Shown piece by piece: positions 426 through 48,307 of a stretch of 64,000 nucleotides of DNA. The translations under genes were made by a program, and so were the position numbers. Under the pieces are notes generated by a model. The model searched no databases and was not told where the DNA came from. It was given only the letters and a program-made list of their open reading frames with translations. Position 1 is the stretch's first letter. Each line of letters opens with the position of its first letter. The stretch comes from Trichoplax adhaerens (lineage: Eukaryota; Animalia; Placozoa): the NCBI RefSeq assembly GCF_000150275.1, contig NW_002060964.1, positions 487,643-551,642 of the forward strand, in the 5' to 3' direction.

Positions 426-537
426 GCATGTTCAAACTCAATTTACTGAATCTGCAGGAGCACTGGCTTACTTTTCCCTCGTGACTGGAATTACTGTTGG
501 TGCAGCTATTTCATTTGGAATAAGCAAGATCATTTAG
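426..537 (+). CDS. ENT/SLC29 paralog A, terminal exon only (TM11); the rest of the gene lies upstream of the window
   Basis: tttag acceptor, then a 112-nt exon reading (K)HVQTQFTESAGALAYFSLVTGITVGAAISFGISKII*. Same length, phase and sequence type as exon 14 of genes B-F; matches the ENT C-terminal motif (hENT1 ETAGAIMAFFLCLGLALGAVFSF). Confidence 0.9.
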
Positions 538-2991
538 TTCAATATTGAATTTAAATTCATTCATGATTACTTCACCTGTAGTACTTTTACCGGAAATATC
601 TATGGTGATATTAAAGTCGGAAGCAATATTTTGCTGTTTTTTTAGATAACTGCTACTGAATTTCAGCATGGAATTTGGGTATCCTATCAATTTTAATTAA
701 ACAAGGCAGTTTGCAGTAATTCTAGCATTTAAAAGATAAAAAAAACGAATAGCTTGCGAGTACTAGGTTGCTTTATTTTGTTGTACTTTTAATCGATCTG
801 ATTATATCGTGAAGTATTTTATGTTGTATCTTGTACTTGTCTAACTGCTTGTATAGTTGAAAAGTTTATTAAAATCCTGTTTGTCACATCAATTTGCTAT
901 TTTCCCGCTCTGCATGTTAATTGTGACTTACTTGTTGCTAATAAGCATGTGTATCGCTGATCTGAACGCTGTGATGTATTCCGCAAAGACTCGGATCTTA
1001 ATCCATCATACTGTAAAAGAGTTAATAATTTATGAATATTAATGTTAATAGCTATTTAAGTTTACTAATCTTGCTAGTGTTACCCATGTGCAGGCCTTTC
1101 TATCTTCTCCAGGTTATAGTCCTCTACGAATTAAGGAAATTAATGACTATTAAACCTTGCCAATCATTTTCCCTCCTACTCTACATTAGATTGGAAGAAG
1201 ATCGCCCAAGATTCAATCTTCGTCCGATAGTTTAGGTTACTAATTATCATGTATGCAATTATACTTAAGACTTGTTACAGATTTCTATTTTATTGAGTAA
1301 TTCGTCCATTCAGATTCGCCATACACGATGGAGCAAAATAATAATATCGTTGATTCTCTTAGAAATTAATTCTATAACGGCTACAAAAACATGTAAATTT
1401 TCCATGGAAACGGACTGATTAGGTAGAGCAAACGTACATTAAGTTTATGAATAATTAACCTTTAAATTTTAATTGGTATAAACTTATATTATTCTGGCTA
1501 CAACTTAAGCAAGTACCATAGTTATGATTAGTGATTGAAATTACTAAGCAGGTAGACGCAAGCGAGAGTAACATTTAAACTCCAAATAAAGATGGATTAA
1601 TATTATCATCACGCACCACCATACTCGCATTACTCCAACCTAGCAGTATTTATTAAAATGCAGTACGTGCATATTTTACTTCAGTTTTTGCAAAAAGAGC
1701 GTAATATCTAATAGTGTATATGCTGCAGCAAAGCTAGATAAAGACTAATTATATAATATTACCGTTAAATTATATATTACCAATTATTAAGCGCATAGTT
1801 ATTGTAGAATCTACAATATAACTGCAACTCATTGGATTCTTGCACGTAAAAAAACAGAAACTGTATCAGCGAGAACCTACTTTTACATATATTTTCCATT
1901 TGATCTTGTTTTATATTATAATTTTGTACCCAAAATGCCTAGAATGATGCTTCTTATAACAGGAATGCAGACGATACAGAAATAATTAGCTAATGCCAGT
2001 AAGATGGTGCTATGTGTAACTTAACTCTAGCGTCATCAATCACTGCAATTTCAGATAAAACATAAAGTACTTAAACTAATTGATTATTACAGATTTATTG
2101 CTATAAGCGAATTATTTTAGTGCAAAGCAACCTAGTTTACTTAAATAAATAGACCAATAGGTATTTTTATTTGCAGTAATATCAGCTAGAATAAAAAATG
2201 ATTGATTTGAAATGAGCATTTCTAAAAATTGCAAGTTTAGAGATCGTTTGGTTTTAATGCTCGCTTAACTTAGATTAAGCCGTTGATAGTGCTAGTGTGT
2301 CTTTCTAGGATCGAGTAGACTGGACAAATTGCAGTGTAAAATTTTAATTCTACTGGATTATAGAAACTCCTTTTGCAAAGAGTAAAGTGGTACTGTATAG
2401 TATTTTTATTTTAATTTATCAACAACTGCATACGTTAGTGTGTTATTCCAGGATAGACCAACCGAAAAAGTGAGTTTAAAACCTGAGTTTCCATTCCGTG
2501 TTTAGACAGCATGGTGATAATTGAAAGCGGTCTTTCCTTAGTCATTCGCAAGGATGACTAAGTAATAATATTGGTCTCCCTTGAGAGCTAATGTAATTGT
2601 TTCGTCTGATGATCACATAATAATACATTAATGAATAGTGCGTTTATGCCAATCGTTGACTAACTAATCATATAATGATATCATATGTTGCATCTTACTA
2701 CGAGAAAATGGTTCATAATGTGTTCACCATTATAATTTATATAAAAGATGAATAAATACTGTTCTCATTCACTATCGAAAAAGCAATTAAACGGTCAAGA
2801 ATTTCGTCAACTACGATTTTCAACGCTAGACACTATATAAAAAGGCCTTGATCACATTCTATATTGGGAAACGAATCTGTTTTTCATTTTATATAGAGAA
2901 TAATTTGCCTACTCGCTTCTTTACTGAACTGGATTGAATTTTCTCCATTAAATATGATATGATATCTAACTGAACCGAAAAATTTTCCATC

Positions 2992-5900
2992 ATGAGTTCA
3001 AAAAGCGTTGGAGCTAAACCGACTGATAGGTAAATGAATCCATGATGATGTAGAAATGGCACTTGTATTGCATTCATACGTAATGCAGGATATAAATTAA
3101 ATTCCCGTATTTCATTTTGTTGCTTTCGAGCTTATTTTGCTTTCACCATCAAATGAGATCTGATCATAACGGATCAGAACAGGATCGTAGAAGTTAATTA
3201 AGTGTTACTTAAAGAAAGAAAAAGTATTTTTATTTCGCTTCTTTTTCGCCTTTCTTTGACAATTGCTTGCGTTTTTTAGCTAATATCACCTTAGTTGACT
3301 TGACTGCTTTTATAACATGATGGCACATGACAGTAGGTTATCCTATTTTTAAATTTCGCCCAATATTTTTCTCAGCATATCACGATCATCCATCCAATAT
3401 ATTGTTATAATATGTGGCTATAACGATACGACATAACGGAGCACTCTCCTATTTTCACCTTTTTTGTTTACTAGTTTTCGTATCTTTACGATTTGTCAAC
3501 CTTATGTGCACATTTTATACGTAAGTTATTTATTCTATATATAGTCATAATGCTTAGATTAAACGATGTCTTGATAATATAACATTTAACCTAGTTAAAT
3601 TTAACGATGATGTCATGCTAGTATACGTTATACTCCATGCTTGCTGCAGATTAATTCTTATTAAAAATCATTCAGCATTACTGCAGTAAATAGATTGGAT
3701 TTAAGCTGTTTATATGGGTGGGCTATAGTTATAGCCGTATTTAGTGCCATTGTACATTTTTAACTTCGTGATCGTCTGCAAAATTACTAAATAGTTATTA
3801 CTTGTGTTTTTCCATTTCTTTTTAGCTTTCTTGATTGCAAATTTCATTGGTTAATGTGTAGTTTGTGCCGTCTTCTCTAATGCTTATTTTATTCTCAGTA
3901 ACAATGAACTTCATATTTGACTAATTGCCACTTCCTTGAAAATAGAATTTTAACTCAGGGATTATAGTTGGATTTAATCTAGATTATATTTCATACATCA
4001 CAATTGGACTTACCCTAGTGGCTGACATTGAGTTTATTTCACCTCCTCTTAGTTTAAACTTATTCCAATTATCGTTTACATTACTTTCATTAATTACTTC
4101 TTTTTTTTATTACATTATTGATCTTACCTCATTTCTTTCATGGTTCAAGTAATTTCCAATTTTAATTTTTAATATTCCTCAAATTATTAAGCTTACCGTT
4201 AGCTAGCAATCCTATGCTTAACCAACTAAAATTGAATTTATTTTACAGATACAATATAATTTACATTGTCTTCATTATCCTGGGAACCGCTAGTACCTTG
4301 CCCGTGCATATTTTTTATACCGCATCTTCGGTAAGAAATACAGCGTCTTGAATGCTGTATCCTTTCCTTTGATCGACATTTATCCTGCTAAATGTGGCAG
4401 TAAACGTTAATTCTTTATTAATGGAATAACTGATTTGGATATCTGGTAGTACTATAAGGCCAAGCTAAAAGGAACACGATATGAGCATGTCATTGAGAAC
4501 TATTTGATGTTGGCTTACAGTTTACCTACCTTATTTATGGGGGTTATCAATCTTATGCTACTGCGATCGTAAGTAGAAATCAGATAAAATTGTCGATATT
4601 CATAATTCTAGTTTAGTCTTTGACCAAGCTAATAAATGATTTGATTTCAATACATTTAATTTTGGTTTAGATTTGATGTCAGAAAACGACTAGCCTTTTC
4701 AGTAATCATGCTTATAATCTTTTTCACAGCTACGGCTATATTGGCAAAATTAGATACAACCAAATGTAAGGCTTTCTCGTTTATAAATTGTATCATGAAT
4801 AGCTTTATTTGTTATCAATAAATGATACCCTACATAGCGCCTATTCTATCGTAAGATCGTTTTTTCCAATTATATGCTAAGTGGTATTTTGTTTCCAGCT
4901 TTTCTATTGGAAATTACTATTTAACATCTGATGGAACGATCAGATTTATTTGTCTAAGCAAATATAGTTACAAATATTTAGTTTGGGGTAGATCGATCTA
5001 AGTGTTCATTGCTGGTATTGAATAAATTTAAAGGTTACGAAAAATTTTACTACAAGTGACGATTTTTTCTTCATTCTAGAACTAATGAAGGTTAATTTTG
5101 TGATTTATTTATTGTAGGGAAAATGACATTTTTTATATTAAGCCTAACAATTATCTCCTTGAACAGCGGTAGGTAAGGCATTGCCCACAAGTTATTTACC
5201 ATCCGTTGCATATACGGGGGTATATATAAAACATTATCCGTTTAATTATTCTAACACAGTTACAAAATATTAATTATGTCTTTAATCATGCAACAAATAT
5301 ATTCAGGAATAAACTGATATTCTTGACAGATAAATGGATGACTAATTACAGCATACTATGCAGTAGTTAAGCTATCAATGGCTCGTAATTCTACGCGCAA
5401 ACTAATTTGTACTAGAATAAAATTGGTAAATCAAAATCATTCTAGTATTAGCTGCTTCTATCCCTACTCTAAGCTAGTCACTCAATAATTTGGCCCCAAT
5501 TGTGGTGACTAAAGTAATTTATGAATAATTATTGTTGAAAAATAGAATAGTAATCGCATAGTTATACAATGTAACTGAGTACATCACCAATCCTAAGACT
5601 ACTCCCCTCTCCAACACCTCACTAATCTTTCTCCAATATGTAACATTCTGGATATTACCAATTGTATTTGGTCATCATTCTAATATTTTCATTGGGATCT
5701 CTATTTCACTATAAAATATATTTTACATCAATTAATCACAAAGTCTTAACGTAATTAAGTAGAGGCTACTTGAAACAACTCGAAAATTTTCAATGCCTCG
5801 CTCATTGAATCTCGTCACAATGTTTCTTATGCCTCAAGTTTAAGAACTAGTCATTTTATTATCATTATTTCTCATTCTAAAATTGGTCATGAGCAAGCAG

Positions 5901-8900
5901 CATATTAAATCGATATTAACGTAAATGTTTATTGCTACCTTTGCAGCATTTTTAGCTGAGGTAAATGTAAAAATTTCACTTTTCTTAATTCCTTCTTGTA
6001 TCTATGTAACAGTGTATTATAATAAATATGCGTATAATTAATTATGCCTGCATTCTTTTTAATTCTTATCTAGTGTTTGGAAGTACTATATATCAAGGAA
6101 GCTTATTTGGATTAGCTAGTATTTTTCCAAAGGAATATGCACAAGCGCTGATCACTGGTCAAGTAAGGGGTTTTATGAGCCAACATTGAATAATACTATT
6201 GCAGAAACTAATTGTTTCATTGATTCTTTTCAGATTAAAGTACTCATATGTAGCATAGATTTGAGTTTATATTTAAAACAGCAGCCTTATTGCGGCTTAA
6301 TTTTATTCACTAGATTTCGAAATTTTTATTAATTAGTTTATTTGATTTCTTTACAGGCTTTAGCTGGTGTTTTTACAGCAATTGTCAACATATTATCATT
6401 AATCGGTATAGTATAGACCTTAATTGTGGATCATCATGTAATTTCCTTATGTTAATGCAATTACTAATGTATGAGTATCTTAAAAACATATTTAACTAGT
6501 AATAAATTTTTCGAATAAATATTTGTATGCTTAAATACCTGTAATATATATGTGATGATATAAAACTGTCATCAGTTACTAGTTAGTAACTAGTTAAATT
6601 GCCCATCTACTAGTTTCTAGACAACTTAACAAGTTTGGATTAGGTAAATAAACATTCGATTAACCTGAGCAATAAATAGTTTATTTAAAGCTAGCTCAAT
6701 CCATTCGCTACACTAGGACGAAAGTTTAATAAACCTAATTTTCCGGCTATGTTAATGCATATTTTGCATATATATATATTTCGAGACCTCGGTGTGATGT
6801 GAATGCAATTGTAATGCACTTGCTTTGTCTATATTTAAATATGCTTAGATCTTTTCGAATAAGGCATCGTACCTGATTAGATTAAGTTAATTTAATGCTG
6901 GTACTAAAAATACCATTAGTTTCCAGAACTTATCACTATTGCAACGCTTCCGAATTCCTTTTTACCATTAATTTGAGATTATAATTATGTACGCATAGTT
7001 GGCGTTCTAGCATTATGTCCATTAGCTAACCCTTGATACTAATGCAAAGATCATGAAATTTTTTGTACTAAACTTAAATATTTTTGCGATGACTTATTGC
7101 AGCTAGCCATTCTGCAAGCCATAGTGGTGTTGCCTACTTTATCTGTGGAATAATTTTACTATTGGTATCCTTAATAATTCAATTATTACTGAAAAAGAAT
7201 GTTAGTATCTCATTCATTTGCTAACGGCTAAAGAATCAACAAAAAGTTTTTGTATAGATATGACAAGCTATTGATATTTTCTTGATGCTGATCAATTCAA
7301 TTTTTTATTCTGTTTCTAGGCTTTTGCAAGATATTATATGGAACTAAATTTAGAATATGGTATATGATCGCCCAGCGATTAGAGTGAAATATTTATCCTG
7401 AACCTCTTATTTGCAAATATGTATAAATTATTTTACGATTCAATTATACAATAGATACCTATCAGAGGAAAAAACTGTTAAGCCATGAAGACGAATTTAG
7501 TGAAACCGATGAAGAACATGAACGTGTTCCAAATGAGGATAGCCGAATATATCGTATTAAGCACATTATAAACAAGGTAATAATGAACAGAAAATTGAAT
7601 ATACCACAGCAGCAACTCGCATTACCGTAGTCCTGGATTTTGAAACAAAGTAACTTCTAAAGGGAAAATATCGATCTTGATTTAAAATCTTAATCCCTAA
7701 ACATCAAATCGAAAATTGCAGTGAATGAAACGTGATACGTCAATTGGCAAATTATTATTAGAAGCAATAATGCAGAGAATGCAGATAATACTTCCTGAAG
7801 TAATTGCACAACAATGTGAAAAATTACTGTTAGCTATATTATAATCGAGTTATAGTAATGCTCTCTTTTTGTAGATATTTTCTCCAGTTTAAATACAATT
7901 TTTCTAGGTGAATTACCTAATTAATTACTTGTTACGCGCTAGTAATTGATAGGACTAAATCTACATAATTATAATGTAAGCCACCTCTGATTAAATTCTA
8001 ATTAAATCACTGCCTCTAGTACAACCATGCCAGTTCAGATCGATTATTTGCTTACAATTCTATTCTAAATTTAGCTTTCAATCCTATCACCAGTGGATGG
8101 TTGAATGTAGTCAGCTCGATTAAGTTAAAAATTTAGCATAAGTAGGATTTAACATTTGTAGCTGTACAGATTCAGTTATTTCGATTTCGTTAGAAATGAA
8201 TGCAAGTAATAAGCAGGACTTAATAAAATTGAAGTCTAAATGAAAACGGTAAATTATAACTCAGATATCCACGAGATTCAGATTAAGAGAAATTTGTGAT
8301 TCATTTGTAAGATGGTTTTTACTGTAATCTAAAAGCTAAGATAAACACAGTTACAAATAGTTAAAAATATTTATGTTATTATTATAGAATTGTCTACTTT
8401 GATTACCTATTGGTAGTAATTTATCTAGTAATTAAATTTATAGAGTATAAATTCTAAAAGATAGCTCTGACGGTAATGAAAAAAAGTGATATGATTATTT
8501 CATAATTTAAAATTCTTTTAATGTTTAACTAAATATAATTCTTGAAACTGGTTGCTCTAGTCAATTTATCTCATTTCAGACATGGCCAGTCGTTTTGGCG
8601 TATTTTTTTTGCCATACAATCACGTTTTGTGTATTTCCTTCCATTTCGTCTCGTGCAGTTTCTATCTACCATCAAAGTCATAGCAAATTAACAGGTGTTT
8701 CTAAGGTTTACGTTTTAATAAGATATGAATAATAGGAATACTTCGTCTACTTTTACGCCTGAAGTTGATGCTATCATTATCAAATGTTCGAATTGTAGTA
8801 ATGGCAAAATAAATTTTTTATGTAACGAATACTATTACAAGTTGGTTAGGCTACTATTTCCTTTAAATTTTTTATTAGTATTGATGATGATTAAATTATG

Positions 8901-10982
8901 AGGCTGAATCGTAATCAGCCTGCAGTTTCTAAGTAAATCTTTGCTCTAATTTAATCTCTGTATTTAAATTTATTGTTTTATGTTCGCTTTCTGTTCTCTA
9001 AATTAGTAATTGAGGCTGAGGAAAATTCTCAGCTAATCAATTAATTAAGCACTGCTAAAAACTATCTTTCGAAGACTAATCTTGATATAATTGAAGATCA
9101 TTTTACTATTCATAACTTAATATACAGGCTATGAACAATATTTTATTTCATAAGCTGCATACTAGAATTTAAAATTGACTGTCATTTAAGAAATATCAAA
9201 ATTAATTTACTCTAGGCATCACCTGCGTGACACTATTTAATATTCATTTTTTTCTAAGGTCCTTTATTTATACCAGTAGCGTGCTTCGTAGTTTTTGCTG
9301 TAGCTGATGTCGTTGGCCGACTTATTTCTAGATGGATATTGATGGTTAGTTCATTCATGCAGACATTTTACTCATTAAAGTGTAAGAAAATCTGAACGTT
9401 AACAAAATAGCAATAGTATGCTTATAAAAAGTCATCAGAGTAATGTCTTATACCTTTTATATTGGTATTATGATTAAACTGTTTACTTAGTCTGTATTTT
9501 CTAGAACAACTGCTTATTTAAAATTTCCTACAACATAAGCATATACTTTTGACATAGTATTTAATGGACCGATGTTGCAGTCACTACTTCAGTGTCTTAA
9601 TTAGAATAGAAATATTAAGAACATCATTTCTAGTTCAAGTGCTTTAGCTTATTTATCTGCACTTAAATCAATAAATTAATAGACTAAATATTCATTCATT
9701 AATATTAGCTAGTATTAAAAAAATGAAATGATAAAATTCTGAAGCATTTTAGATAAGAATAAGGAAAGTAATAATCTTAAGTAAATAGAAATTAGATATT
9801 GTAAATGGCTACCGATTACGATCTAACTTGTCTTATTCTACTTTGCTTTACTCCTTCAATACTAACGGATCTAGCCAAGTCAAAATCAAGGTCTATCTTT
9901 ACTGTTTATGTCTATAAGCAGAATTTCTCTTATTCCACTCTTCCTCTATTGTAACGTCAAACCTCGACAGCATTTACCTGTCAAAATTTACAGCGATATT
10001 GCTTATATCATTCTAATACTACTGCTTGGTATTTCTCATGGATATGTCGGTACACTGTGTGCTATGTATGCACCAAAGTAAGTACTGTCCTAGAAAGAAC
10101 TGAAAATGTATAGTCATAATGACGATATTATTACTTTTTACTTACAATTATTTCTATCAACACTCACCGAGGTAAAAAAAGATCACAATTTTAGCGGATA
10201 AATTAAAAATTTATTACAATTATGGTAAATTCACAAAATATTTAATTATTGATAAATGCTCGACGTAGTTTAGAAATGGATTTTATCTTTTCTGAATTCC
10301 TACACAGAATTATTTATTGATTTCGATAACCAAGATTGCTATTGCTGTAGGCTTTATATCGATTTAATCAACTTTTTCACAATGTTTGGGTAAGAATAAT
10401 CACAGTTATAAGTAGAGCACGGCATTATCTTAGCTGGGAATTAAATAATCCTATAAAAGATACGTAGCTAATAACTGCCACCTGGTATATGAATTATGAT
10501 GTGATAGTCGAATCACAAGTAATAGTCTGACGGAGCTTTGACTGATATGATAATGATTGAAATTCGAGCATAAATGATGATTTACTTTGGTGATCGTAAC
10601 AGGCTACTACATGTTTTTAATCACTATAAGAATTAATGATTATTGCAAATAATTGTGAAATCGAATTCATAAGCAACAAATTATTTTGTCCAGTTTTCAC
10701 TCTTGATGGATGTTCAGGGCTACTTATCTGTTTGGTATTTAATTGCCAATAATTAATGAGTTGAAAATTCTTTTCGCCATCTCCTATTTACTCGCATGTC
10801 ATCCTTTTAGTAGATCCCAATAGTTTAACAAGGTATGATATAGTTATACTTTCATTTTCATTTTATTTAGGCGTGTTCAAGCTCGATTTAGTGAATCTGC
10901 AGGAGCCTTGGCTTACTTTGCTCTCATTGCTGGAGTGGCTACTGGTACGGCAATATCGTTTGGACTCATTGCGATCATTTAG
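2992..10982 (+). CDS. Equilibrative nucleoside transporter family protein, paralog B (14 exons, about 432 aa)
   Basis: Exons 2992-3029, 4249-4330, 4450-4568, 4671-4765, 5118-5168, 6074-6162, 6357-6405, 7103-7200, 7320-7359, 7455-7576, 8580-8694, 9259-9344, 9875-10077, 10871-10982. All introns GT-AG with consistent phases; total 1299 nt open frame. Motifs: MSSKSVGAKPTDRY, IYQGSLFGLASIFP, GQALAG, FIPVACF..ADVVGR, PLFLYCN, SHGY, ESAGA. Confidence 0.92.
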
Positions 10983-11464: not shown

Positions 11465-11578
11465 NNNNNNNNNNNNNNNNNNNNNNNNNNNNNNNNNNNN
11501 NNNNNNNNNNNNNNNNNNNNNNNNNNNNNNNNNNNNNNNNNNNNNNNNNNNNNNNNNNNNNNNNNNNNNNNNNNNNNN
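11465..11578. other. Assembly gap
   Basis: Run of N. Confidence 1.
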
Positions 11579-13324: not shown

Positions 13325-13565
13325 AGATGTAGTAAAAGGACTAAAAGTAGAGTCCATTGTAGTTTTTAGTATGTAATTAGTATTATTTTACTATACAAAA
13401 TACCTAGAAAGTGATAGTGTCTTTAAGTTTTACCCTACCAAATCATCATGTCGCCATCTTTTCTTCTTCATTATTTTACAAGGTATTATATAGATTACTA
13501 TAGAAGTAGCCCTATAGAGCAAATGCCTAATCTAAAGAAAGGGCGTTTCATCGTCTATTCAAATT
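13325..13565 (+). repeat. Dispersed repeat of about 240 bp, copy 1 (upstream of gene C; runs into a gap)
   Basis: Aligns with 50605-50845: taagttttaccct.ccaaat...atgtcgccat.ttttcttc...tatagattactatagaa...cctaatctaaagaaag.gcgttt. Confidence 0.85.
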
Positions 13566-13615
13566 NNNNNNNNNNNNNNNNNNNNNNNNNNNNNNNNNNN
13601 NNNNNNNNNNNNNNN
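13566..13615. other. Assembly gap
   Basis: Run of N. Confidence 1.
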
Positions 13616-14347
13616 TCTATATTTCTTTGATGATTTATAGAATCATCAACTAACCTGTGCTTGCTCAGTAATGGTCGTTTTATACAATCGAACACAATTT
13701 CTTTAATGTTTACCAAGCGATGATGTAGAATGACTAAAGGGAGTAACTATACTTCTTTGAAGCAATAGTTAATACTGTAGCTACAAATATAATTATCGGT
13801 ATAACAGTAGTATATTGGACAATTCTTGTGGCGAAATTGTTCATCGCTTTAAATTTAATACAAGGCTAACTACCGTCAACATTGAATTCGATAGCAAACA
13901 GAACTTTTCATAGATTCAACCACTACGTTATTCCCTACGGGTTTTGTACTGATTATAATTGTAATCAATTTAAAGTCCTTAGAGAATAAAGTAGTCGGTG
14001 AATCTAACGTACATATGCACAATAAAAACAAATAGTGAATAGAAGTATAGTGATTCCCTAGAGTCATTCTTTCTTTTCGCTCGATAAATATTGAATTCCA
14101 TTGATGCTGCATTTATTAGCACAAATAGTAGTTACATTATTTTATATTAATTATGCTTATGTGAAGAAAAAAGCTTTAATAAGTGATATGAAACTGCTTA
14201 GAAAGTCAAGTGGAAAGAATAAGAAGTAACGTTTTATCGCAAGTTTTTGATTAAAGTCACTTTTGATTACGTTAGAGCTTCCATTTAATTTAAGATTTGT
14301 CTTTAAATCTGATCTAGTCTAAAAGCTCATTGTTGAATCGTTCTACT

Positions 14348-33200: not shown

Positions 33201-35111
33201 GATGGTATATGCTGTAATGATATAGCTTGTGATCCAGTTTTAATTGGACATTAAGCTGTTCAATAGTCATTAATATATTCCAGAGATTACGCAAATCTAC
33301 CGCTCTCAATTGTGTCTATGCAATGTTATGTTATTAGCAGTTGATTTTTCGTTTATATTTCTGTCTCTATCATAACATAAGCACTCAGAGAAGTCTTAAT
33401 GAAAGTAAATGTTACGATATCTCTGATCGTACGTGCTGTTTATACAAAGAGCAATACCAAAGCATTCCATAGTCTTACAGAAAACGCAAGGAAGAATTTC
33501 CAACTCTAAAAACACTTAATCGCTTTAAAAAAACACTTAAAATACTACTGTAAATTGCAAGCGACAGGCTCATGAAGCATTTAATACCGGTAATCCTCTG
33601 TATTAACGACATTATCTTATGGCTAAATCAAGCATCTTAGTTTCCGCTTTTGATAACTATCCATACTCAAACAGAAATGCCACTGAAATCTCTAACCCCG
33701 ATACGTTATGAATATTATAAAAGGGATTTTTATTTTAATGTAAATAAAAAATTATATTGCACGTCTGTTAGATACAATATTATAGGTGTCAATCTAACTC
33801 GTATACTGTTGAAGTAATTTTATTTTTTTATTACATTATACCAGGTCCTCTATTTATACCTGTAACATGCTTTCTAATGGATGCTACTGCCGATATTGTT
33901 GGTCGAATTCTCTCCAGATGGATACTATTTGTAAGTTAAGGAATGCATTTATGACATTATTGATAAGGCATGAAAGATTATCCTTTAAAAAATGAGTCTA
34001 ATAACATTGAATTAAAACTGCTTATATACATAATCTAAATTGTAGCAAACAAGTAATTTTCTGCAAATTTATGCTATAATATTTTTTATCAAACGCGCAT
34101 CTTCTTCAAAGCAACAGTTACAATTGTAGATGATGTACTTAATTGATTAATTAATGGTGATTTCATTAGTTAAAACAACTTATTATTAATACATCAATAT
34201 GCACTGATGAGGATGAAATGATACATTTGCAATGAGCTGATAAATTATTTACAAACTAAAATTAGAATTATAACGTTCATTACTAATCGTATAGCAAACT
34301 AGATCAGGCCAGATTTTTCATTGCAGTTCACGTCTTTAAACAATTCTTCCACATTTATGCCATATAATAGAATGAACCTTTATAAGTGTACAATAGCTAA
34401 TATTAGCTAAGTAGCCAATTTGCTCCTTCATTTATTAAAATATATTTTACGATAAAGCTGCCATGATTAGTACCATTGATCAAACTTTAGCACGATATAT
34501 TAGAATTAAGTTTGTATATAAAATTAAATGGCCACAAAAAATGATTTTATCAATTTCTTAATTAATCAGTAAAAGAACTTGATTGTTTTTAATTTCTATT
34601 TCATAACCTGAATGTAAATGGATCTAGCCTAGGCAAAATCAAGGGATATTGTTGCTTTTAATATCCTTATGCAGAGTTATCTTTATCCCACTCTTCCTTT
34701 ATTGTAATATCCATCCACGAAAGCATCTGCCAGTAAAGATCTACAGCGATATCGCTTATATGGTATTGATTATGCTGTGTGGCTTTTCTCATGGGTATAT
34801 AACTACGTTATGTACTATGTATGCGGGAAAGTAAGTTCCATATTTAGCTTAAAGTAGGTTCAACTTTGCATTTATAGCTATTCGTCATTTCACCAAATTT
34901 ATTGATTATAAATGAGAAAATTTTAAAGATATTGCACATAAGATCATACCTTATCGAATTACTTAATCCTATCATGTAATTCTACAATATTATTTTTAGG
35001 CGAGTTCCACCTCAATTTAGCGAATCGGCAGGAGCAATTATCTATTATTTCGTTACTGTTGGGATTGCCGCAGGTACAGCGGCATCATTTGTAGCAGTTT
35101 CAATACTTTAG
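27261..35111 (+). CDS. ENT/SLC29 paralog D (14 exons, about 428 aa)
   Basis: Exons 27261-27283, 29109-29190, 29303-29421, 29542-29636, 30606-30656, 31564-31652, 31831-31879, 32008-32105, 32245-32284, 32391-32515, 32624-32738, 33845-33930, 34628-34830, 35000-35111; total 1287 nt open frame. METKPPDRY...SLFGLVSIFP...ADIVGR...PLFLYCNIHPR...SHGY...ESAGA. Confidence 0.92.
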
Positions 35112-35994: not shown

Positions 35995-36510
35995 AATCTA
36001 GCCGAATGCAACTACTAGAAGAACTTTAGGCGATTGATTAAATCATCTAAAATTGCCAGCTTATATACTTTTCGTAGCATCTGCAGCTGTAAGCACAAAT
36101 TTGTATCAGCCAGTTTTAGGGCAAATTTAGATGAGTAGAAATAGTTAGGTTACTGGCTTTACATCAGTTACTGGGGAAATTGCTTTACAAGACGTTATAG
36201 ATTGTTGATCACAAAGTTACTATGGTGAGATAATCGTTTCTCTTGCAAGCTGAAATTATCTAGTTACAGATCGGCGCCTGTGCTCACAAACATTTTACGA
36301 ATAGCAATATAAATTGAATTTGTGAAGTATAGGTCTAATATCCTTGGAAAAGGTCCATTTTCAACGCGTAAGAATGGTATTCGATCTATAAAAGTGGATT
36401 GATGTGATGTAGTCGACTTACAATCTTAGAAATCTTTGATCGTCTATATCCCTAGGGGAACGACAGAGGATTGATTGCGTTAGGCTAAATTATTTCTTTA
36501 TTGAATCTTG
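35995..36510. repeat. Copy of the gene D upstream region, partly inverted
   Basis: About 35995-36170 matches 26190-26360 directly (aatcatctaaa.ttgcc.gctta.atacttttcgtagca.ctgca). About 36170-36510 matches 26445-26800 as a reverse complement (tgctcacaaacatttta vs taaaatgtttgtgagca; tccctaggggaa vs ttcccctaggga). Confidence 0.85.
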
Positions 36511-36659: not shown

Positions 36660-39478
36660 CAACTATAAATAGCTTGCCACCTTGGCTTTCGACACTGTTG
36701 ATTAACCTAGTTTACGTGTGATATTAAAAATGTTTCATTAAATTTCTGATGGTGTATACCGTAATGATATAGTTTGTAATACTGTCTTAATTGGACATAA
36801 TCCAGTCCAAAGTCATTGATACATTTAATAAATTACGCGAATCTACCGTTCTTAATTATATCTATGCGATTTTTATAATTCGCTATCGTGAATGATCTTA
36901 CTGGAGGCAAATATCACTACATCTCTAATTGTATATACTGCCTATACAAAAAGTAATACAAAAGTATACTATGGTCTTACACGAAATGTGAGGAAAAATT
37001 TCCATCTCTAAAATCAGTTTCTCGCTTCTAAATGCATTTAAAGACATTACCATAGCGCCACAGGCAGCAGGATTATAGAGCATTTTATTTGAGCACCTAT
37101 ATATTTAATTACCTTTATAATCCTCTATTTTAGGGGCATTATTTTACGGCTAAATTACATAATTGATTTTCCGCTATTGATAGCTTCATACTCAGAAATA
37201 TCACTTAAATCCCTAACTTCTGATACCTTATAATTATTATAAAACTGATTCTTATTTTACTGTAAATAGAATATTATATTGCACTACTAATAGAAATGAT
37301 ATTACAGATGTCCATCTAGCTCATACGTTGTTGATGTAATAATATTTTTCCACTATGTTATACCAAGTCATCTATTTATACCTGCAGTATGCTTTCTAAT
37401 AGATGCCACATCCGATATTGTTGGTCGATTTCTCTCCAGATGGATACTATTTTTAAGTTTAGGAATCACCTAAGATTAATAAAGCATGATAGACTATCCT
37501 TTAAGAATGAGTCTAACAACATTGCATCGAAACTGATATTATACGTTTTATAAAATATAGCAAATAGGTTATTTTTGCCATTTTAAAGTATAATATTCTT
37601 CTACCTTATTAAAATATTGTGATATATATCCATCACGAAATTCCAAATTTTAGAAAATAAGGGCTTTATTGAATCTTATACAAAGATTAACTACACACAG
37701 CTCTACTCTAGCCGAATACTACTATTAAAGACTTCTAGAACGAACTAACAGAATAATCTAAAGTTGTATGCTTTTATACTTTCCGTAGCATTCGCAGCTA
37801 CAATCCGCATAGCAACCTTTTACCTTATTTTACACATAGTTAAATTATTCTTAGTAAGACTATTCTACTGCGGACCATCATTAATCCAATATGGATACGA
37901 CTACAGTGCTTACGTAGACATTATTCACACCAGCCAAAGTACAATGAATTAACCATATCCTAATATATGATTTACAGTTCTATTTTTACCTATAGCCTTA
38001 TTAGTAACTCAACAGCTTACTGTATATAGTCATCTGTACTCTAGCATAGAGTCTCTACCACTACAGTCTATAGTTATAGCTACCAAATATCTCTTAGGAT
38101 AAATATCTACCGTACATTATACTAAACATGGCTAACAGTCTACAATCACAATACTAAGTTACATTACAAATATATTTTACAGTGAAGTTTGAATCAACAG
38201 TAGCATTAAGATGACTTTAACATGGTATATAAGAATTAAGTTTGTCTATAAAAGTAAATTTTTCCGTAATAAATGATTTTATCGATTTCTTAATTAGTAA
38301 TAGGACTTAAATTTATCCAATCTATTATCTCATAACCTGAATACACATGGATCTAACCTAGGTAAAATCCAGGGAAACTGTTGCTTTTAATATCCTTATC
38401 CCACTCATCCTTTATTGCAATATCCATCCACGAAAGCATCTGCCGGTAAATATCTACAGCGATATCGCTTATATGATATTGGTTATGCTGTGTGGTTTTT
38501 CTCGTGGTTATTTGGTAATATTATGTTCTACGTATGTGGGAAAGTAAGTTCCGTATGTAGTTTACAGTACATTCGAATTTCAGATTCACATTCTATTTAC
38601 CATTTCCACAAATTTAAATGATTATAAATGCGAAATTTTTACAGCTATTACACGTAAGGCCATACATTATCAAATTGATAAATACTATAATGTAATTCTA
38701 CAATATTGTTTTTAGACGTGCTCCACCTCAACTCAGCGAATTGGCAGGAGCAATTGCCTATTATTTCTTCACCGTTGGAATTATTGTAGGTACAGGGGCA
38801 TCATTTGGAGCAGCCGTAATACTTTAATTCATCCACGCTATCGGATGCTAAATACATCCTGATATGGTTACAAATTTCTGTGTATAGTATTTATTTGCAA
38901 ACTGTACGATAACTGTATAAGCGATAGAACATGCGGCATAAGGTTTGCCTATAGCTTATGTCACGAAAGATATCCTTGCATTGATCATGAAGTCTATCAA
39001 TCATTATATCCAAACTTTATAAGACAGCAGTAATCTACTTGATTTCAATAAATTTGCAGATACTAAGGCAGTTTATAGTATAAAAGATTACTTATACATT
39101 GAGAAGCTTATGATATCCATGACAACTAGGTTATAGCATAGCAAAGCAACTGGTTGTCTAGTCTATGATACAAATTTAAATCACTATTTCCAGTGCTGAT
39201 GTTAGTCATTTCCTTAAAGCTTGATACAGACGTCGAAAGTATTCAAATTTCAAAGACATCATAATCCTCAATGCTCAACCCATTAAATAGCAATAGGATA
39301 TGATCTCAGTATTATAGCAATAGGTTAAATTGGACGTGCCGATAGCTTAACAGTTCAGCCCCTAAGGACGTGAGAACCCTCAATGCATAGCACCATACGA
39401 ATAACTTAATTCTAGACATAAACCTCAATATCATGGTAACAAGATCTATATCTAACTCAATAACCTCATCTTGAAAAG
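36660..39478 (+). pseudogene. ENT pseudogene D': degraded duplicate of the 3' part of gene D (intron 11 to 3' flank)
   Basis: Collinear with about 32870-35765. The exon 12 copy (37367-37452) has lost its acceptor (cag to caa) and donor (gt to tt). The exon 13 copy (38357-38543) has lost its acceptor (tag to taa), has TAA at its third codon and an internal deletion. The exon 14 copy (38716-38827) is intact. No copies of exons 1-11 seen. Confidence 0.88.
37705..37800 (+). repeat. Third, more diverged copy of the 26190/35995 segment
   Basis: tagccgaata..actatta..gactt..aatctaaagttg..tgctt.tatactttccgtagcattcgcagct aligns by eye with 35998-36090 and 26200-26280. Confidence 0.65.
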
Positions 39479-40860: not shown

Positions 40861-43800
40861 ATGGCTTCAGAGATCATCAAAACCATTCCTCCCGATAGGT
40901 AAACGTAATCGTGATATGTAGCGATATAAAACTTGTCATAGATTTTAATAGACTTTGAAATACATTCTATCATATCATCTAGAACGGTATAAAAGATTAA
41001 ATTCTATTTGTAAGTTGCAGAAACTTTTAACTTCTTTCTCTTGCAGCATTATTCCTACTAATTTACTAGGAAATATTAACTTCCATGTTTTACGATATTA
41101 AGGCTTGTTTGAACGTCATGTTTTACTGTGTTTTATTAAAGTTTAATTACTTACTCAATTGCATTCTTCGAGGGATCTATCTGATAACTCTACTTTTAGT
41201 AACTTTTCACAGTACTGCAGAATCTTAGGTTAATAGAACTTCGAGGTTTATCAAATCCATCGGTGGCGATATTCATCGTAATGTAGATATCTAAAGCTTC
41301 TTATGACTACTATACCGGACACTTGTTACACCAGCTAGATGCACCAACGTATACGTATTTTATTTCATCATCAAATTTTAAAGCAATTGACTGATCCGTC
41401 TTTAATAGCGCAAGAATCGTTATCGATAATTAAATATAGGTTAACTAATTATTTAAGACAAATTCTGAATCAATTTTGGCCTTTATGCCGCCATTTTGGC
41501 TATTTGATTGGCCTATTCAATTGATTGGACATCGATTAAACGTTGGCAAGTTACGGACTCGCTACTGTACCTAAGGATGTGGAATTTTATACTAGACACT
41601 ATTGAGATATCACCTAAAAAGAGACTGACTGTCCTTCAGACAACGATCAATTAGAGTTAGGAATTTACTCTTCCATTGGCCTTATTTTCTCATACTATTA
41701 TTGAACGCTATGATACTCTAGGATTTAATTGACATTGCACCTAACTCCATTGGAGTTAGATTTTTACCCGTATGCTGGCCTTACTTTATTTCTGTTATTG
41801 ATAACTACGATGCACTATGAGCTCATTGATGTTGTATCTCGCTTCGCAATATCTACGAATTAGATTGCTAAACTACTTTAGCTGATAGATTGAATTAATT
41901 TTAGATAGAATTTAAGGTCATCTTCTTCATTACCCAGGTTATTACACTGTTTCCTTCATATCATACAATATACTAACCTTGATTTAATGAATCAAGGCGT
42001 AATAAATACTCACATACCACATCTAAATTCATCCCGCTTATTATCGGTGAAATATAGCTTCCTTATTTTATAATTAGGCTAACTTTCAGTTAATTAACGA
42101 CTTTAATACAAATCGTTGAACTAATCAACTTTGAAATCAGACTTGCAGATAAAATGAAGCTCATCATCTTCATTACTCATGTTATTGTGCTATTCCTTTC
42201 ATATTATACAACATCTAACCTTAAGCTAATGAATCAAGGCGTAATAAATAGTCGCCTACTACATATTGAACTCTTAGTTATCGGCGAAATATTTCTTCCC
42301 TATTTTATATTTGGGCTAACTTTGAGTCGGTTTATGACTCTGCAGTAAATTATGCAACCTTTAACCTGCAAAATTTTAACTCGATCTTACTACTAAATCG
42401 AGTCTATTTACAGTATATTATTTATATTACAGATATTATATAGTTTGGATATTATTCTTTCTCTTTGGAATCGCCAGTGCCATGCCTGTACATATATTTT
42501 TTACCGCATCAACAGTAAGGAAATATTTAGAATTTTCATCTTTTAGTTGATTCACCTTGGCAAGTGCCAATCATGTTGATTAATGTTATTGACTTCTTTG
42601 ATTAATCAATATGAGCCTCTTGTACTACAGTACTTTTCTGCTAAGCTAGAAGGAACGCCATACCAATATACTGTTGAGAATTACGTGATGCTCGCCCATA
42701 GTCTACCTACACTATTTATTGGTACTGTGAATATTTTGCTACTGCGATCGTAAGTTATGTTGAACAGCCGTCATTGATATTAATGATTGTGACTTTAAAT
42801 CTCTTCTATACTCTAATCGGTTAAAAACGAAAGCTTATTTTACTTTTTGCAATTTTTTAGGGTTGATGTCAGAAAACGTATCATATTTTCCTTGTCTGCT
42901 ATGATATTCTTTTTTATAGTTACAGCTGTCTTGGCCAAAATAGATACTTCTAAATGTAAGCTATTATTATTTGAATGTATAGAATTAATAACTATCCGGA
43001 TTATCGATACAGTTACCGTTAGCATAATGAAGTATTATTACCTGAATTATAGAGAATAATCCAGATCATAAATTAGTTATTACTACTTCAATCGGTTAAC
43101 TTAGTACGAAATTATTTGACCAATATCCTCATTTTTTTTCCCCTATACCCTTATGCTGTATTATATGAGATAGACTACTATACTTGAATAGAGAAAATCC
43201 ATCTGTTCATTCATCTATTATTTACAGCTTTGCGAGTATCTGTGATTTCATGCTAACAATATTTCCAGGCTAGCTCTAATTTAAAATGTAGATTACAATT
43301 ATCAGTCTTATCGTTGGTTTATCGAAATCATTAGATTTCATAAATCATGCTTGACCAAGAAAAGCCAAATATTCTTCTTTAAGATAAATAAATTAGTTTA
43401 TCAATTATTTTATTTGAAGTAATTTGAGCTATTTCAATCTATTTTCGATATTACAAGATCCCATTTACTGATCAGCTTTTAAATGTATTAGAAGTTACTG
43501 TGTCCTATCGTTTTTAGTTATAGTATGGTATAAATTGCTTCAATAACCGCTACATGTGCAATTCAATTAGAGTTTATTAGTTCCATTTTGTCTCTATTTG
43601 CTGTACCATAATAAGTAAGCTTATTATTCTTTAGCAGTTTGCCAGGTTTATTTCTGACTTGCGACATTTTACCGTCATTTTTTTAAATCAAACGGCAAAA
43701 TTTAAATAACATTCTTACACATCGATCCTATCTATTTTACTTTCAACTTTTAAAATCTTTACGACTCATTTCCTCACCACTATGTAGTATTTATCTCTCA

Positions 43801-46800
43801 GTCAGTTTATACCTTTATGTTATTTGAATAAGAATAAACTAGCCACTTTCTTTATAATTTTTTAGCTATAAGTTACTTATCGTGGAACAATTTCTTTATC
43901 TTCTCTTACAGGGAAATTTACGTTTTTCGTTCTAACCTTAACGATTATCATCCTAAACAGTAGTAAGTAAAATAGATTAAATAAATTCGAAAATCTATGT
44001 AGGGTGAAAATAAAATTTTTAATGGTTCAATTCTATCTAACAACTATAGCAGTAGCCAAAGTCATTAAATAAAGCACAGCATAGATTTACCTTATATTTG
44101 CACTATTAACCAAAAAATTAAGACTGAATATTCTATACCATATAGTTACTTACAGCAACTTGAGAGTTCATTTCATCATGCACTTTACACATTACTAGCT
44201 CACTTATGGTTGTTTTTGAAGCCAAGTAAACATTGTCTATGGATAAGTAAATTAATAAGGCATATAGTAGACGGTCATAGTGATTTAATTTTAATCCAAG
44301 ATTAGAATACACCATTTTAATTTACTTATAGCGCTATTCAACAGGTTCCAATAAATTCAACTATTAACTTTCTAAGTAAATTTAAATGTAACCAAGATCA
44401 AGTGAATTGTAACAGAGTTCTCTTCTATTCGCTTCCGTCACTATGGTAGTCAGTAAATTCATCTCAGTCATGATTAATGATGCCAATCAACGAGTATTCG
44501 TTATATTCACGACTATGGATTTTCCGTCAGAACTGGCATACAAACAACCAATACCTTATCTAATTTCTTTCTTTTACTTCTATACCTGTAATGCAAACGA
44601 TACCAAGTGCTTGGCGGCACAATTTATCAAGCAAGTGTATTCGGATTGGTTAGTGTCTTCCCCAAGGAATACGCACAAGCTTTAGTCGCCGGTCAAGTAA
44701 GGAATTTTAAGATTGTGTAATACTGTATCAGAAGTTATCATGTTAATTTAATGATATTCAATATACGTATTAAATAAAAGTTTCGACTGCCTTTAAATCA
44801 AGCCTAATGTTCCATTTGTTTCAACCTAAATTCATTAAGATATATATTTCTTTGCAAATTTTTGCAGGGTATATCCGGTCTCTTTACTGCACTATCCAGT
44901 ATCCTATCACTAATCGGTATGAAACAGAAAATTAGTTGCAATGATAAATAATAGTAAAAGAGAGCACTCAATATTCCTATTCACTTTTTTATGCAATAGT
45001 CTAGTAATTGTTATCGCTATATTAAGATCTTAAAGTATATGAGATCTTGAATTTATCAATTGAATACTCAAGACTGTTCAAGTATAAAGGAACCAAAGCT
45101 TTTTGACTAGTTTAACTCCGTCTATATAACAACTATACAGCAAAATCTAGTCATCACTACCTCAATATCGAGTTCTAAACATTATTAAATCTTGAATTTA
45201 TCGTATTGAATATTCAAGATCGTTTTGGTTAAACTGTAGTGTACGGGTTATTAGCCCTGGGTACTTAATTCGTAAACTCAAAATTCTGAGTTGTTAAAAT
45301 CGAGGAAATCCCTAATGTGACACAAAATAGTCAACACCGAATAATTGACTTATAAAGGTTTAGTTTATTAACGTCCGTGTGTCGTCAGTCAAAGAAGAAT
45401 TCCAATTTCTTCCCTAATAATAACAGTTGAAAATGGCTAAGATAAACCGGATAATCGACTTAGCCTCTACGATAAAAATTCTATACAACTTATACAAATT
45501 ATCATCAATTGCTCCTCTACATAGGAGTCATCAATCACATTAGTACATTGCTTAATAATATTACTTAATATGGCTATCAGCTACGGGCTTATATAGCACG
45601 TACTATATTAAGATATACAGTTCTACACAACATATCATCGCTGTATTACCTACACAAAACTACTGCAATTAGCTGAAATCACTACGTAAGCATGAAGAAG
45701 TTAAGATTTAATAGCTAGTTTAATACCATCTACATAACTACACGGTATAATCTAGTCACTTTTATCACAGTATTGAGATTTTAGACAAAGTTCAAGACTG
45801 TTCAACGTAAGCATGATGACTATATATTGGATTGTAGATGATTAGCTTAGCTTAGAAAAATGCTCTTACTAGACTGTAAATTCAGCGTATGAGCGAGATA
45901 CAACTACTTAGTTTCAATGATCTTAAATAGTATGTATGTTGATTTACTATTAATGGTAGTGATTAATAGTGACGATTAGACCATAGATTTACTAAAATAG
46001 TCGTAATATAGCAAACGAGTAATAATTTCTGTAGAAGTACAATATATTTTACTTTATTAAATTGCAAACAATCAGCCGAAATATAGGTTCCCAATAGTAA
46101 TGCTGTGCTCGTAAAATGAGGTCTTCGTAGGAATTATCGTGTATTCAGCTAGAATAAGTCTGTGTATAATGTCTTGTATGAAGATTCTAATAAATTTCTA
46201 ATTATCTTTGATAAGTAATTGATTCGTGATTTTTTCATCACAGTAGTCGAAATATTACCAATACGTCTGGCAATAACTATAATGTATACTAAATTTTTTT
46301 CTAGTAACGGGATCCGCAAGTCGCAGTGGTTTTGCTTACTTTGCCAGTGGAGTTGGGATACTAGTCTTATGCATGATTATTCACATACTACTGAACAAAA
46401 ATGTCAGTTTTATTTTCATAATATATCGATATTAAGTATATTTGAAATAGTACGGTAGAATATCATTTTGGTAAAGGAAGATAGTTAATAAAGTAAATTT
46501 TATACAGCACTTCCAAACTATAACTTCATTCTATGCCAATTTTTATCTAGGCTTTTGCAAGATATTATATGGAAACACGTTTAGAATACGGTTCTAACCT
46601 TATTGATTAAATACAATACAACTAAAAAATTTCAATCAACATTAGATAGACTATTAACCGTATTCACTTATTAATCGGATAATTGTAAATCATTGAATAC
46701 AATCAAAATAGATGTGCAGCAGAAGAAAAAGCTTCTAGATGACGCAAGACGTTCTAGTGATTCTGACGACGAAGATGATCATGTTCCATACGAAAATAGT

Positions 46801-48307
46801 AAACTGCGGCGCATTAAGTATATTTTTGGAAAGGTAATCAAGAATACTATTAGAATTAGACTTACCAAAGATTGAGAAAAAATGGAAATTTCATTGAATA
46901 ATTTAATTCATACGCTGTTTGATTTTCAGGTATGGCCAGTTGTTGTTGCCCAACTTCTTTGTTGTGGTGTTTCGTATTGTATTGTTCCGAGTATTGCGTC
47001 GCGAGCTATTTCCATCTATCGTGGAAATAACACCCTGTTAACAGGTATTGTTACCATAATTTCAGTAGTTTAAACTCGTTGTCGTATATTGTTTCTATTC
47101 TAGACTTGAGCTCCATCAATTTATGGTTTTTTAACCTAGTTTCGTAGCTGGTAATGCTATCTTAATTTAATGACTGTTATTTAATTCAACCGTAATTTAT
47201 ATACTTCAAATGTTATGCTCATCTGCCATACTCAATTAAGGTCTATAGCATATTATGTACATAGCTATTGCTATCTTGAGTATCATTGCGTTATTATAAC
47301 ACTGTAAGTATATAGAAAGACGATAGTTAAGGTAGATCCAGTATCTTATCAGATAAGAATATTCTTATTTTCCCATGTTCTTAAAGATAAATGATATTTA
47401 AAGTAAATGACTATACTGGCGTCCATAATTACCGGAAATATAACTCACTCATACGCGTCGGATGGCTCTAATTTATGTACTATGGTTCTAGAGTTATCAA
47501 TTCAACTCTTGTATTGCTGAATTAATATTGATTTCCTGATATTTTTTTTATTAGGTCCATTATTTATACCTATAGTATGCTTTCTATTATTTGCCGTAGC
47601 CGATGTGGTCGGCCGACTGACCTCCAGATGGATACTATTGGTCAGTCAAGGAGTATTGTTTAGTTGATAGAATACTTTCTAAACCATTAGTCTACTAAGT
47701 CTTAACTAATTTGATATAAGGCTAACGTATAGCGGATGAGTTATTTATTTACTATAAATATATCAACTATAGCTTGATTTCTTTATGTTTTATTTCATTA
47801 TCTGTATGTATATGGATCTAGCCCGGTCAAAATCAAGGGATATTGTTGCTTATCATATCCATTAGCAGAATTATTTTTATTCCACTTTTCATGTATTGCA
47901 ATGTTCATCCACGAAGGCATCTGCCAGTAAAAATCTATAGTGACATCGTTTATACTATATTAATTGTATTACTTGGCATTTCTCACGGTTACATCAATAC
48001 ATTATGCTCCATGTATGCACCAAAGTAAGTCTTAGCTTTATCAGAGCTTACAGTAGGCCATATTTGAATCAGATACTTACTGATTATTTCCATCAATAAA
48101 TTACACATTATGATGAAGACGCCTTTACAGCTATTGCTAGTGTCTTGTCTAGCTACTCCTGATATTTAATTACAGTTTAAATTAAAATTTTTTAGGCGTG
48201 TTCCACCAAAACTTAGCGAATCAGCAGGAGCAATGGCCTACCTCTTTCTCGTTATTGGGGTTACTGTAGGTACATTAGTATCATTTGGAGTGGTTGCGAT
48301 GCTTTAA
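40861..48307 (+). CDS. ENT/SLC29 paralog E (14 exons, about 432 aa)
   Basis: Exons 40861-40898, 42433-42514, 42631-42749, 42861-42955, 43912-43962, 44608-44696, 44868-44916, 46305-46402, 46551-46590, 46712-46833, 46930-47044, 47555-47640, 47822-48024, 48196-48307. MASEIIKTIPPDRY...IYQASVFGLVSVFP...ADVVGR...PLFMYCNVHPRRHLP...SHGY...ESAGA. Confidence 0.92.
41660..42335 (+). repeat. Two adjacent tandem duplications (about 90 bp x2 and about 240 bp x2) in intron 1 of gene E
   Basis: gagttag...tggcctta.ttt...ttattga near 41665 and 41753; tcatc.tcttcattac.ca.gttatt...taatgaatcaaggcgtaataaata...ttatcgg.gaaatat near 41918 and 42161. Confidence 0.8.

Follow-up and report, generated by a model that had tools for sequence, protein, structure and literature searches.

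What can a family of nucleoside transporters still carry once the most conserved polar residues of its permeant cavity have been exchanged? This question is raised by a 64,000-nucleotide stretch of the Trichoplax adhaerens genome (scaffold C1393:487643-551642, 31.6% G+C, six N runs; hereafter the window), in which a preliminary description had noted neighbouring genes of the equilibrative nucleoside transporter family (ENT, SLC29) with asparagine-to-histidine changes. A genome-wide scan with the profile PF01733, together with examination of 60 kb upstream and 50 kb downstream of the window, delimited seven intact genes of this kind in tandem, here called His-type, three of them (G2, G3 and A) upstream of the window and four (B, C, D and E) inside it. 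We consider it probable, although well short of certain, that they represent a placozoan-specific SLC29 clade that arose by serial tandem duplication and encodes working carriers with shifted, copy-specific permeant selectivity. Among transporters, expansions confined to one lineage and accompanied by pocket changes are a common finding. We found no paper on these gene models or on a placozoan ENT expansion, and a 2010 survey of SLC families only counted SLC29 genes per species, in a figure (PMC3058773).

Seven His-type genes and their predicted fold

Along the chromosome the order is G1(-), G2, G3, A, relic A', B, C, D, relic D', E and F(-), where G1 and F are canonical ENTs that flank the array, both on the opposite strand (Table 1). 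The PF01733 scan of the genome matched exon 13 of B, D and E and found more ENT exons elsewhere on scaffold C1393. Gene models were obtained with a protein-to-genome spliced aligner, using as template a protein of Trichoplax sp. H2 (P0166), and the procedure was validated on G2, for which the 459-amino-acid H2 protein was reproduced exactly. Genes A, B, D and E consist of 14 exons each (38, 82, 119, 95, 51, 89, 49, 98, 40, 122, 115, 86, 203 and 109 nt, the first being 23 and the tenth 125 nt in D), all 13 introns are of the GT-AG type, internal stops are absent and a stop codon directly follows the last exon. Besides, the first exons share a common 12-codon design with Pro-x-Asp at the end. 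The product of D is identical to P0166, which is named 'equilibrative nucleoside transporter 3' in H2, and the existing model TRIADDRAFT_61363 (P0001) is a partial version of the same gene.

Only two assembly gaps interrupt gene C, and they correspond to 953 and 310 bp of collinear H2 sequence. The window aligns with H2 contig NOWV01000043.1 (loci L015 and L016) in collinear blocks of 98.8-99.8% identity (blastn), and when the gaps were filled from this contig (99.5% identical) C became an intact 14-exon gene reading SHGY in transmembrane helix (TM) 10. Thus, the earlier view of the genes as intact holds for B, D and E, and for C with this filling, but not for the supposed gene 'A' of the preliminary description: that exon belongs to relic A', whose TM9-10 exon (some 527 to 318 bases upstream of position 1) is readable only with a frameshift, and the real gene A terminates 1817 bases upstream of the window.

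Membership in the family was supported at several levels. The joined gene models were used for alignment, tree and substitution rates, profile and PDB searches were run exon by exon, and full-length searches were made with P0166 (gene D) and with P0151 and P0015 (G2). Exon 13 of E alone reached 62.9 bits against PF01733 (cut-off 29.8), and both P0015 and P0166 have a precomputed match to the same profile. The fold was tested on P0151, the G2 orthologue, whose AlphaFold2 model from a 32-sequence alignment had a predicted local distance difference test (pLDDT) score of 87.9 and a predicted template modelling (pTM) score of 0.87. Foldseek returned the human ENT1 (hENT1, SLC29A1) structures 6ob7, 8tzi and 6ob6 as best matches to this model, with target-normalised TM-scores of 0.93-0.96 and root-mean-square deviations (rmsd) of 2.4-2.8 A (0.94 and 2.4 A for 6ob7). 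According to this model, the His-type proteins are predicted to have retained the ENT fold of 11 helices together with the greater part of the translocation core, at about 26-27% identity to hENT1.

A remodelled permeant cavity

Positions are given in hENT1 numbering. For TM1, TM10 and TM11 they were mapped by HMMER alignments of single exons to hENT1 chain 6ob6_A, which are ungapped in these helices, and for TM2, TM4, TM7 and TM8 by aligning full-length P0166 with the same chain (E = 2e-48); the 6ob6_A index equals native +1 before the loop deletion and -31 after it, as checked on L442, D341 and R345. Exon 12 of E (TM8) on its own had no PDB match and was mapped through P0166. On this basis the Val-His of gene E falls on W29-N30, the histidine of SHGY on N407, a new tyrosine on A435 and a Val or Ile on L442. 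All TM1, TM8, TM10 and TM11 motifs quoted in the preliminary description were recovered in their places by six-frame translation (Table 1; the TM11 motifs are GALAY, GAMTY, GAIIY and GAMAY, and GAIMA in F).

An unbiased column scan identified 115 mapped columns that are at least 60% conserved in 29 outside ENTs, of which 23 have lost the conserved residue in six or all seven of the His-type genes, including L26, W29, N30, F31, N338, N407, M434 and L442. Taking the ligand-contact list compiled from published work (L26, W29, N30, M33, Q158, F307, P308, F334, N338, D341, R345, N407 and L442; PMC10353158, PMC9168172), six of 13 conserved contact positions are changed (L26, W29, N30, N338, N407 and L442) as against 17 of 102 other positions (odds ratio 4.3, Fisher p = 0.022, a value that is optimistic because the list overlaps residues flagged beforehand, namely N30 and N407). 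Five of these positions, W29, N30, N338, N407 and L442, are replaced in all seven genes, and the claim that the altered positions are strongly conserved elsewhere was borne out for W29 (0.86 of the 29 outside representatives), N30 (0.76), N338 (0.86) and N407 (0.93). Moreover, Plasmodium falciparum ENT1 (PfENT1; 7WN0, a substrate-bound structure), in which W53, Q135, D287 and R291 correspond to W29, Q158, D341 and R345, differs from the His-type proteins in retaining Trp-Asn in TM1 and Thr-Asn-Gly-Trp in TM10, which shows Asn30 and Asn407 to be ancient.

The roles of several of these residues are described for characterised ENTs. W29, Q158, N338, D341, R345, L26 and L442 contact ligands, and L442I alters selectivity (PMC10353158); docking assigns D341, R345 and N407 to ribose recognition, and N30, a residue of the extracellular vestibule, contacts dilazep (PMC9168172); and W53A, Q135A, D287A and R291A abolish inosine transport in PfENT1 (PMC10050424). 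Judged by their sequences, the His-type genes are a divergent ENT subfamily and not canonical ENTs. The cavity residues are indeed changed, but the pocket is better called remodelled than rebuilt, as in the preliminary description, since P308, F334 and G154 are kept in 7/7 genes and the triad Q158, D341 and R345 in most copies (5/7, 5/7 and 6/7, respectively). F307 is Phe or Tyr in six copies and Val in E. The complete triad occurs only in B, E and G2, while position 158 is Cys in D and Leu in G3, position 341 is Asn in C and Glu in A, and position 345 is Gly in A. The shared loss of pocket residues also has to be qualified: N30His, N407His and Tyr435 are specific to the clade (435 is Ala in hENT1 and F, Asn in G1 and Phe in P0007, a related protein discussed below), whereas F and G1 have already exchanged W29 for Phe and P0007 has Ile there, and N338Ala is also found in P0007.

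One way to read these exchanges is that they are structurally balanced and functionally neutral, the bulk lost at W29 and L26 being regained at position 33 and by Tyr at 435, so that the proteins would transport ordinary nucleosides in the manner of F. The bulk gains (Tyr or Phe at 33, Tyr435) do co-occur with the losses, and the intact triad of B, E and G2 agrees with this explanation. However, N30, N338 and N407 are polar and belong to the ligand contacts or the vestibule, not to the packing, and mutations at W29/W53 and L442 shift affinity or selectivity in hENT1 and PfENT1 (PMC10353158, PMC10050424), for which reason we regard full compensation as quite unlikely.

The histidines themselves invite a bolder explanation, in which they would create a new mechanism, either proton-coupled or sharply pH-gated transport, or a cationic position 30 binding an anionic or strongly polar permeant such as urate-like purines or phosphorylated or carboxylated nucleoside derivatives. 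Both asparagines turned into histidine on one branch, by AAY to CAY codon changes at 30 and 407; position 30 then became CGA in G3 and CGC in C, and 407 went from CAY to CAA in G3. As G3 and C are not sisters, the change from His30 to Arg happened twice, which suggests that a positive, protonated or hydrogen-bond-donor side chain is used at this position, and in C it is accompanied by Glu26, one helix turn away, and by Asn341. The roles assigned to N407 and N30, the report of urate transport by human ENT3 (PMC12752747) and the location of the array among saposin-like genes of lysosomal type point in the same direction. Against it, the orientation of His30 and His407 is taken from homology to N30 and N407 only, His to Arg is a common conservative change, and mutagenesis of human ENT3 assigned a minor part in pH sensing to its histidines and pointed to Asp219 and Glu447 instead (PMC5972795), which tempers the pH-gating idea. 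We therefore consider such a mechanism unlikely, although worth keeping in view; pH gating, proton coupling and metal binding by the two histidines, as put forward in the preliminary description, are conjectures.

Descent, selection and the favoured explanation

A maximum-likelihood tree was built from the nine array genes, P0007 and 27 outside ENTs covering vertebrate ENT1, amphioxus, sea anemone, molluscs, arthropods, a bryozoan and a fungus, with vertebrate ENT3 not among the representatives. All placozoan ENTs fell in one clade (100/99), deeper nodes being weakly supported, and the seven His-type genes were monophyletic (100/98), in agreement with the earlier idea of a tandemly expanded subfamily. 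Their sister is P0007, the gene on C1414, which resembles them in already having I29 and A338. The branching order G2, G3, (A,B), (C,(D,E)) is the chromosomal order. Amino-acid identity is 43-73% inside the clade and 37-47% to F and G1; these two share with the His-type copies the placozoan clade, the chromosome region, the 14-exon structure and most exon lengths, and differ in retaining N30, N338, N407 and L442. An affiliation of the placozoan genes with ENT4/PMAT was considered and dropped, the sample having no labelled ENT4.

Of the 150 best representatives drawn from 1.84 billion proteins, only the two from Trichoplax show the SHGY signature in TM10, and a related-locus search found no relatives of the array on metagenome contigs. 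A lead to another placozoan, P0002 (Logan runs SRR30664515 and SRR30664516), turned out to be a G1-type exon (SNGY) and not His-type.

The ratio of nonsynonymous (dN) to synonymous (dS) substitution rates, omega, was 0.16-0.30 (NG86) for every pair with estimable dS, dS being saturated in most pairs. The youngest pairs are A-B (dN 0.153, dS 0.754) and D-E (dN 0.230, dS 0.981). The His-type genes are old duplicates (dS of 0.75 or more) under purifying selection, and the expectation that they are maintained by selection was thereby upheld. The pocket stands out by its conservation in outside ENTs but not among the paralogues: in outside ENTs its conservation is 0.665 compared with 0.347 for the rest, a value reached by 0/1000 random column sets, and among the seven paralogues it is 0.53 compared with 0.557. 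The protein as a whole is constrained, while the pocket is diversifying or lacks extra constraint.

Redundant duplicates drifting towards loss of function would also yield a pocket conserved no better than its surroundings, the altered residues being a sign of decay. The missing triad residues of A, C, D and G3 can be read in this manner, the two relics and a 163-amino-acid ENT fragment in H2 indicate that copies do die here, and E shows five nonsynonymous and two synonymous differences between H1 and H2, too few for significance. Nonetheless, all seven genes have 14 intact exons with canonical splice sites, start and stop at dS values from 0.75 to above 2, and their omega equals that of comparisons with the canonical F and G1. 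Besides, A338 and Y435 are invariant, H30 occurs in 5/7 and H407 in 6/7 copies, indicating constraint on the new state, and P308, F334 and G154 are retained. Relaxed constraint thus appears to us very unlikely. The H1-H2 comparison gave nonsynonymous/synonymous counts of 0/1 for D, 5/2 for E and 3/4 for F, with introns differing by 0.6-1.0%, numbers too few for dN/dS; the substitutions between E and its H2 orthologue are L23I, M30I, V103I, R234H and R253W, counts too small to interpret.

In the explanation that we favour, an ENT3-like ancestor would have duplicated serially in tandem. W29 and N338 were lost before the clade stem, on which N30 and N407 became His, 435 became Tyr, L26 was replaced by a small or polar residue and L442 by Val or Ile (Phe in G2, Tyr in G3). 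Copy-by-copy divergence followed, with His30 changing to Arg (G3, C), Q158 being lost (D, G3), D341 changing (A, C) and R345 being lost (A). The His-type proteins would then be functional facilitative carriers, with a permeant selectivity that is altered and not the same from copy to copy. B, E and G2, which keep Q158, D341 and R345, most likely still move nucleoside-like molecules, and A, C, D and G3, which lack at least one triad residue, may use other permeants or be impaired. Overall, the His-type ENTs probably carry a different cargo, and a changed substrate or pH dependence is plausible.

Comparison with human ENT3 (SLC29A3), a lysosomal and acid-activated carrier, gives a mixed picture. 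The H2 models carry its name in the NCBI annotation, and G2 has an N-terminal EEKILL (residues 13-18) of the endolysosomal sorting type [DE]xxxL[LI]. In contrast, G3 and A to E are without a dileucine motif and have only 7-12 residues N-terminal to TM1, and the pH sensors of ENT3 are its acidic residues and not these histidines. Since human ENT3 without its N-terminus goes to the cell surface (PMC5972795), a surface location of G3 and A to E is conceivable. As a hypothesis, a cationic position 30 could fit an acidic compartment or a digestive space.

Several points weigh against the favoured explanation. Four of the seven copies lack Q158, D341 or R345, positions where mutation abolishes transport in characterised ENTs, and by this analogy A, C, D and G3 may have no part in nucleoside transport, or may have lost some of their function. 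Relaxed selection would equally leave the pocket with no extra constraint, the p value for changes at contact positions is optimistic owing to the prior flagging of two residues, and the saturation of dS affects most of the pairwise rates. The only other placozoan genome compared, that of H2, is 99-99.5% identical and consequently tells little about long-term conservation. In addition, RNA evidence was not found, the exact product of D occurring in the protein database solely through the H2 genome annotation.

Genomic setting and significance

The coordinates of the array and of the features around it are collected in Table 1. Gene F is orthologous to H2 RDD43128.1 (P0011), from which it differs at three residues.

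Table 1. Genes, relics, gaps and a neighbouring gene of the His-type ENT array (window positions; residues in hENT1 numbering)
Feature	Position	Strand	Structure	Exons	Motifs	Pocket residues
G1	upstream of window	-	canonical ENT		PFN, FNTSD, SNGY	
G2 (TRIADDRAFT_61354)	upstream of window		His-type		PIH, FATAD, SHGY	Q158 D341 R345 F442
G3	upstream of window		His-type		PIR, YAIAD, SQGY	L158 Y442
A	upstream of window		His-type; own exons 13 and 14 and stop codon		PIH, YAVAE, SHGY	E341 G345
Relic A'	426..534 (TM11 exon)	+	partial 3' copy downstream of gene A		GALAY	
B	2992..10979	+	His-type; 14 exons, 432 aa; TAG after last exon; exon lengths as in A and E	2992-3029, 4249-4330, 4450-4568, 4671-4765, 5118-5168, 6074-6162, 6357-6405, 7103-7200, 7320-7359, 7455-7576, 8580-8694, 9259-9344, 9875-10077, 10871-10979	LPVHIF 4298-4315; FAVAD 9294; SHGY 10034	T26 V29 H30 Y33 Q158 A338 D341 R345 H407 Y435 V442
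Gap	11465-11578		intergenic, B to C; clear of exons of B, D and E			
Gap	13566-13615		intergenic, B to C; clear of exons of B, D and E			
C	14348..22427	+	His-type; exons 6 and 13 in gaps	14348-14385, 16717-16798, 16917-17035, 17150-17244, 17893-17906 (runs into gap), 18953-19001, 20020-20117, 20257-20296, 20437-20558, 20654-20768, 20940-21025, 22319-22427	MPSRIF 16766-16783; FAISN 20975	E26 S29 R30 I33 Q158 A338 N341 R345 Y435 V442; H407 read from H2
Gap	14574-15044		intron 1 of C; clear of exons of B, D and E			
Gaps	17907-18855 and 21367-21679		inside C; cover end of exon 5, exon 6 and exon 13			
D	27261..35108	+	His-type; 14 exons, 428 aa	27261-27283, 29109-29190, 29303-29421, 29542-29636, 30606-30656, 31564-31652, 31831-31879, 32008-32105, 32245-32284, 32391-32515, 32624-32738, 33845-33930, 34628-34830, 35000-35108	LPMHIF 29158-29175; DATAD 33880; SHGY 34787	T26 M29 H30 Y33 C158 D337 A338 D341 R345 H407 Y435 I442
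Relic D'	37320..38824	+	partial copy of last three exons of D	TM8 about 37320-37456; TM9-10 38373-38543 (5'-truncated); TM11 38716-38824	DATSD, SRGY	
E	40861..48304	+	His-type; 14 exons, 432 aa	40861-40898, 42433-42514, 42631-42749, 42861-42955, 43912-43962, 44608-44696, 44868-44916, 46305-46402, 46551-46590, 46712-46833, 46930-47044, 47555-47640, 47822-48024, 48196-48304	MPVHIF 42482-42499; FAVAD 47590; SHGY 47981	A26 V29 H30 F33 Q158 A338 D341 R345 H407 Y435 V442
Single N	51727		intergenic, E to F			
F	52296..57471	-	canonical-type comparator; 14 exons, 469 aa		LPFNMF 55480-55497; FNVAD 52835; SNGY 52530	L26 F29 N30 L33 Q158 N338 D341 R345 N407 A435 L442
Saposin-domain gene	59041-63924	+	SapB_2 match 62805-62906			

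Relics A' and D' each lie directly downstream of an intact gene and hold only its last two or three exons; for D', upstream exons were not found and the beginning of the TM9-10 exon is replaced or deleted. The H2 annotation has the similar ENT fragment of 163 amino acids following G2, and it seems characteristic of the array that 3' gene ends are repeatedly duplicated in part. Trichoplax has about a dozen ENT genes, few of them with a canonical cavity. Further members are found at C1393:590398-591660 (about window 98800-104500; PWY, FGLTD..GK and SNGL), at C1414:2440440-2449126 (the P0007 type; PIN, CALGD..GA and SNGY) and at C1380:172617-173408, the last being very divergent, with few introns and STGH in TM10.

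Regarding other neighbours, SapB_2 matches beyond the saposin-domain gene of the window occur at C1393:455549, 558869 and 574812-576775, and five of the eight best genome-wide SapB_2 matches lie on scaffold C1393 within about 120 kb, interleaved with the ENT array. The H2 annotation places a 492-amino-acid SapA/SapB protein beside F and one of 399 amino acids after G2. The ENT and saposin genes may constitute a co-expanded lysosomal or digestive gene neighbourhood. Between G1 and G2 lies a gene for a 265-amino-acid class I S-adenosylmethionine-dependent methyltransferase (Ubie_methyltran, Methyltransf_11 and similar), at L017:4465-6939 in H2 and about 50 kb upstream of the window in T. adhaerens. 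Two pairs of intergenic stretches, 13408-13627 with 50698-50806 and 26214-26310 with 36019-36135, are mutually alike (69-94% when translated) and are probably copies of a small repeat element. Ten other open reading frames of the window had no Pfam match.

In its most far-reaching form, the idea of a new mechanism would make the clade a set of pH-driven or anion- or polar-permeant-selective carriers, acting through His30 (or Arg) and His407 with paralogue-specific pockets and serving the extracellular or lysosomal digestion by which placozoans nourish themselves. We find this unlikely, and continue to prefer functional carriers with selectivities that have shifted copy by copy.

ENTs are both drug targets and drug carriers, and the rules of their selectivity are drawn from only two structural templates, hENT1 and PfENT1. 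The array adds seven related pockets under selection, with substitutions at the polar cavity positions that are otherwise best conserved but with the fold, and the core for the most part, apparently preserved, and the same genome provides canonical controls in F and G1. If the His-type proteins turn out to work as F does, Asn30 and Asn407, supposed to be essential, would prove dispensable, which would also be useful knowledge. If, instead, they have new permeants or a pH dependence, they would reveal the cavity positions on which selectivity and coupling depend in SLC29, and would suggest that an early-branching animal which digests its food externally has specialised in its nutrition.

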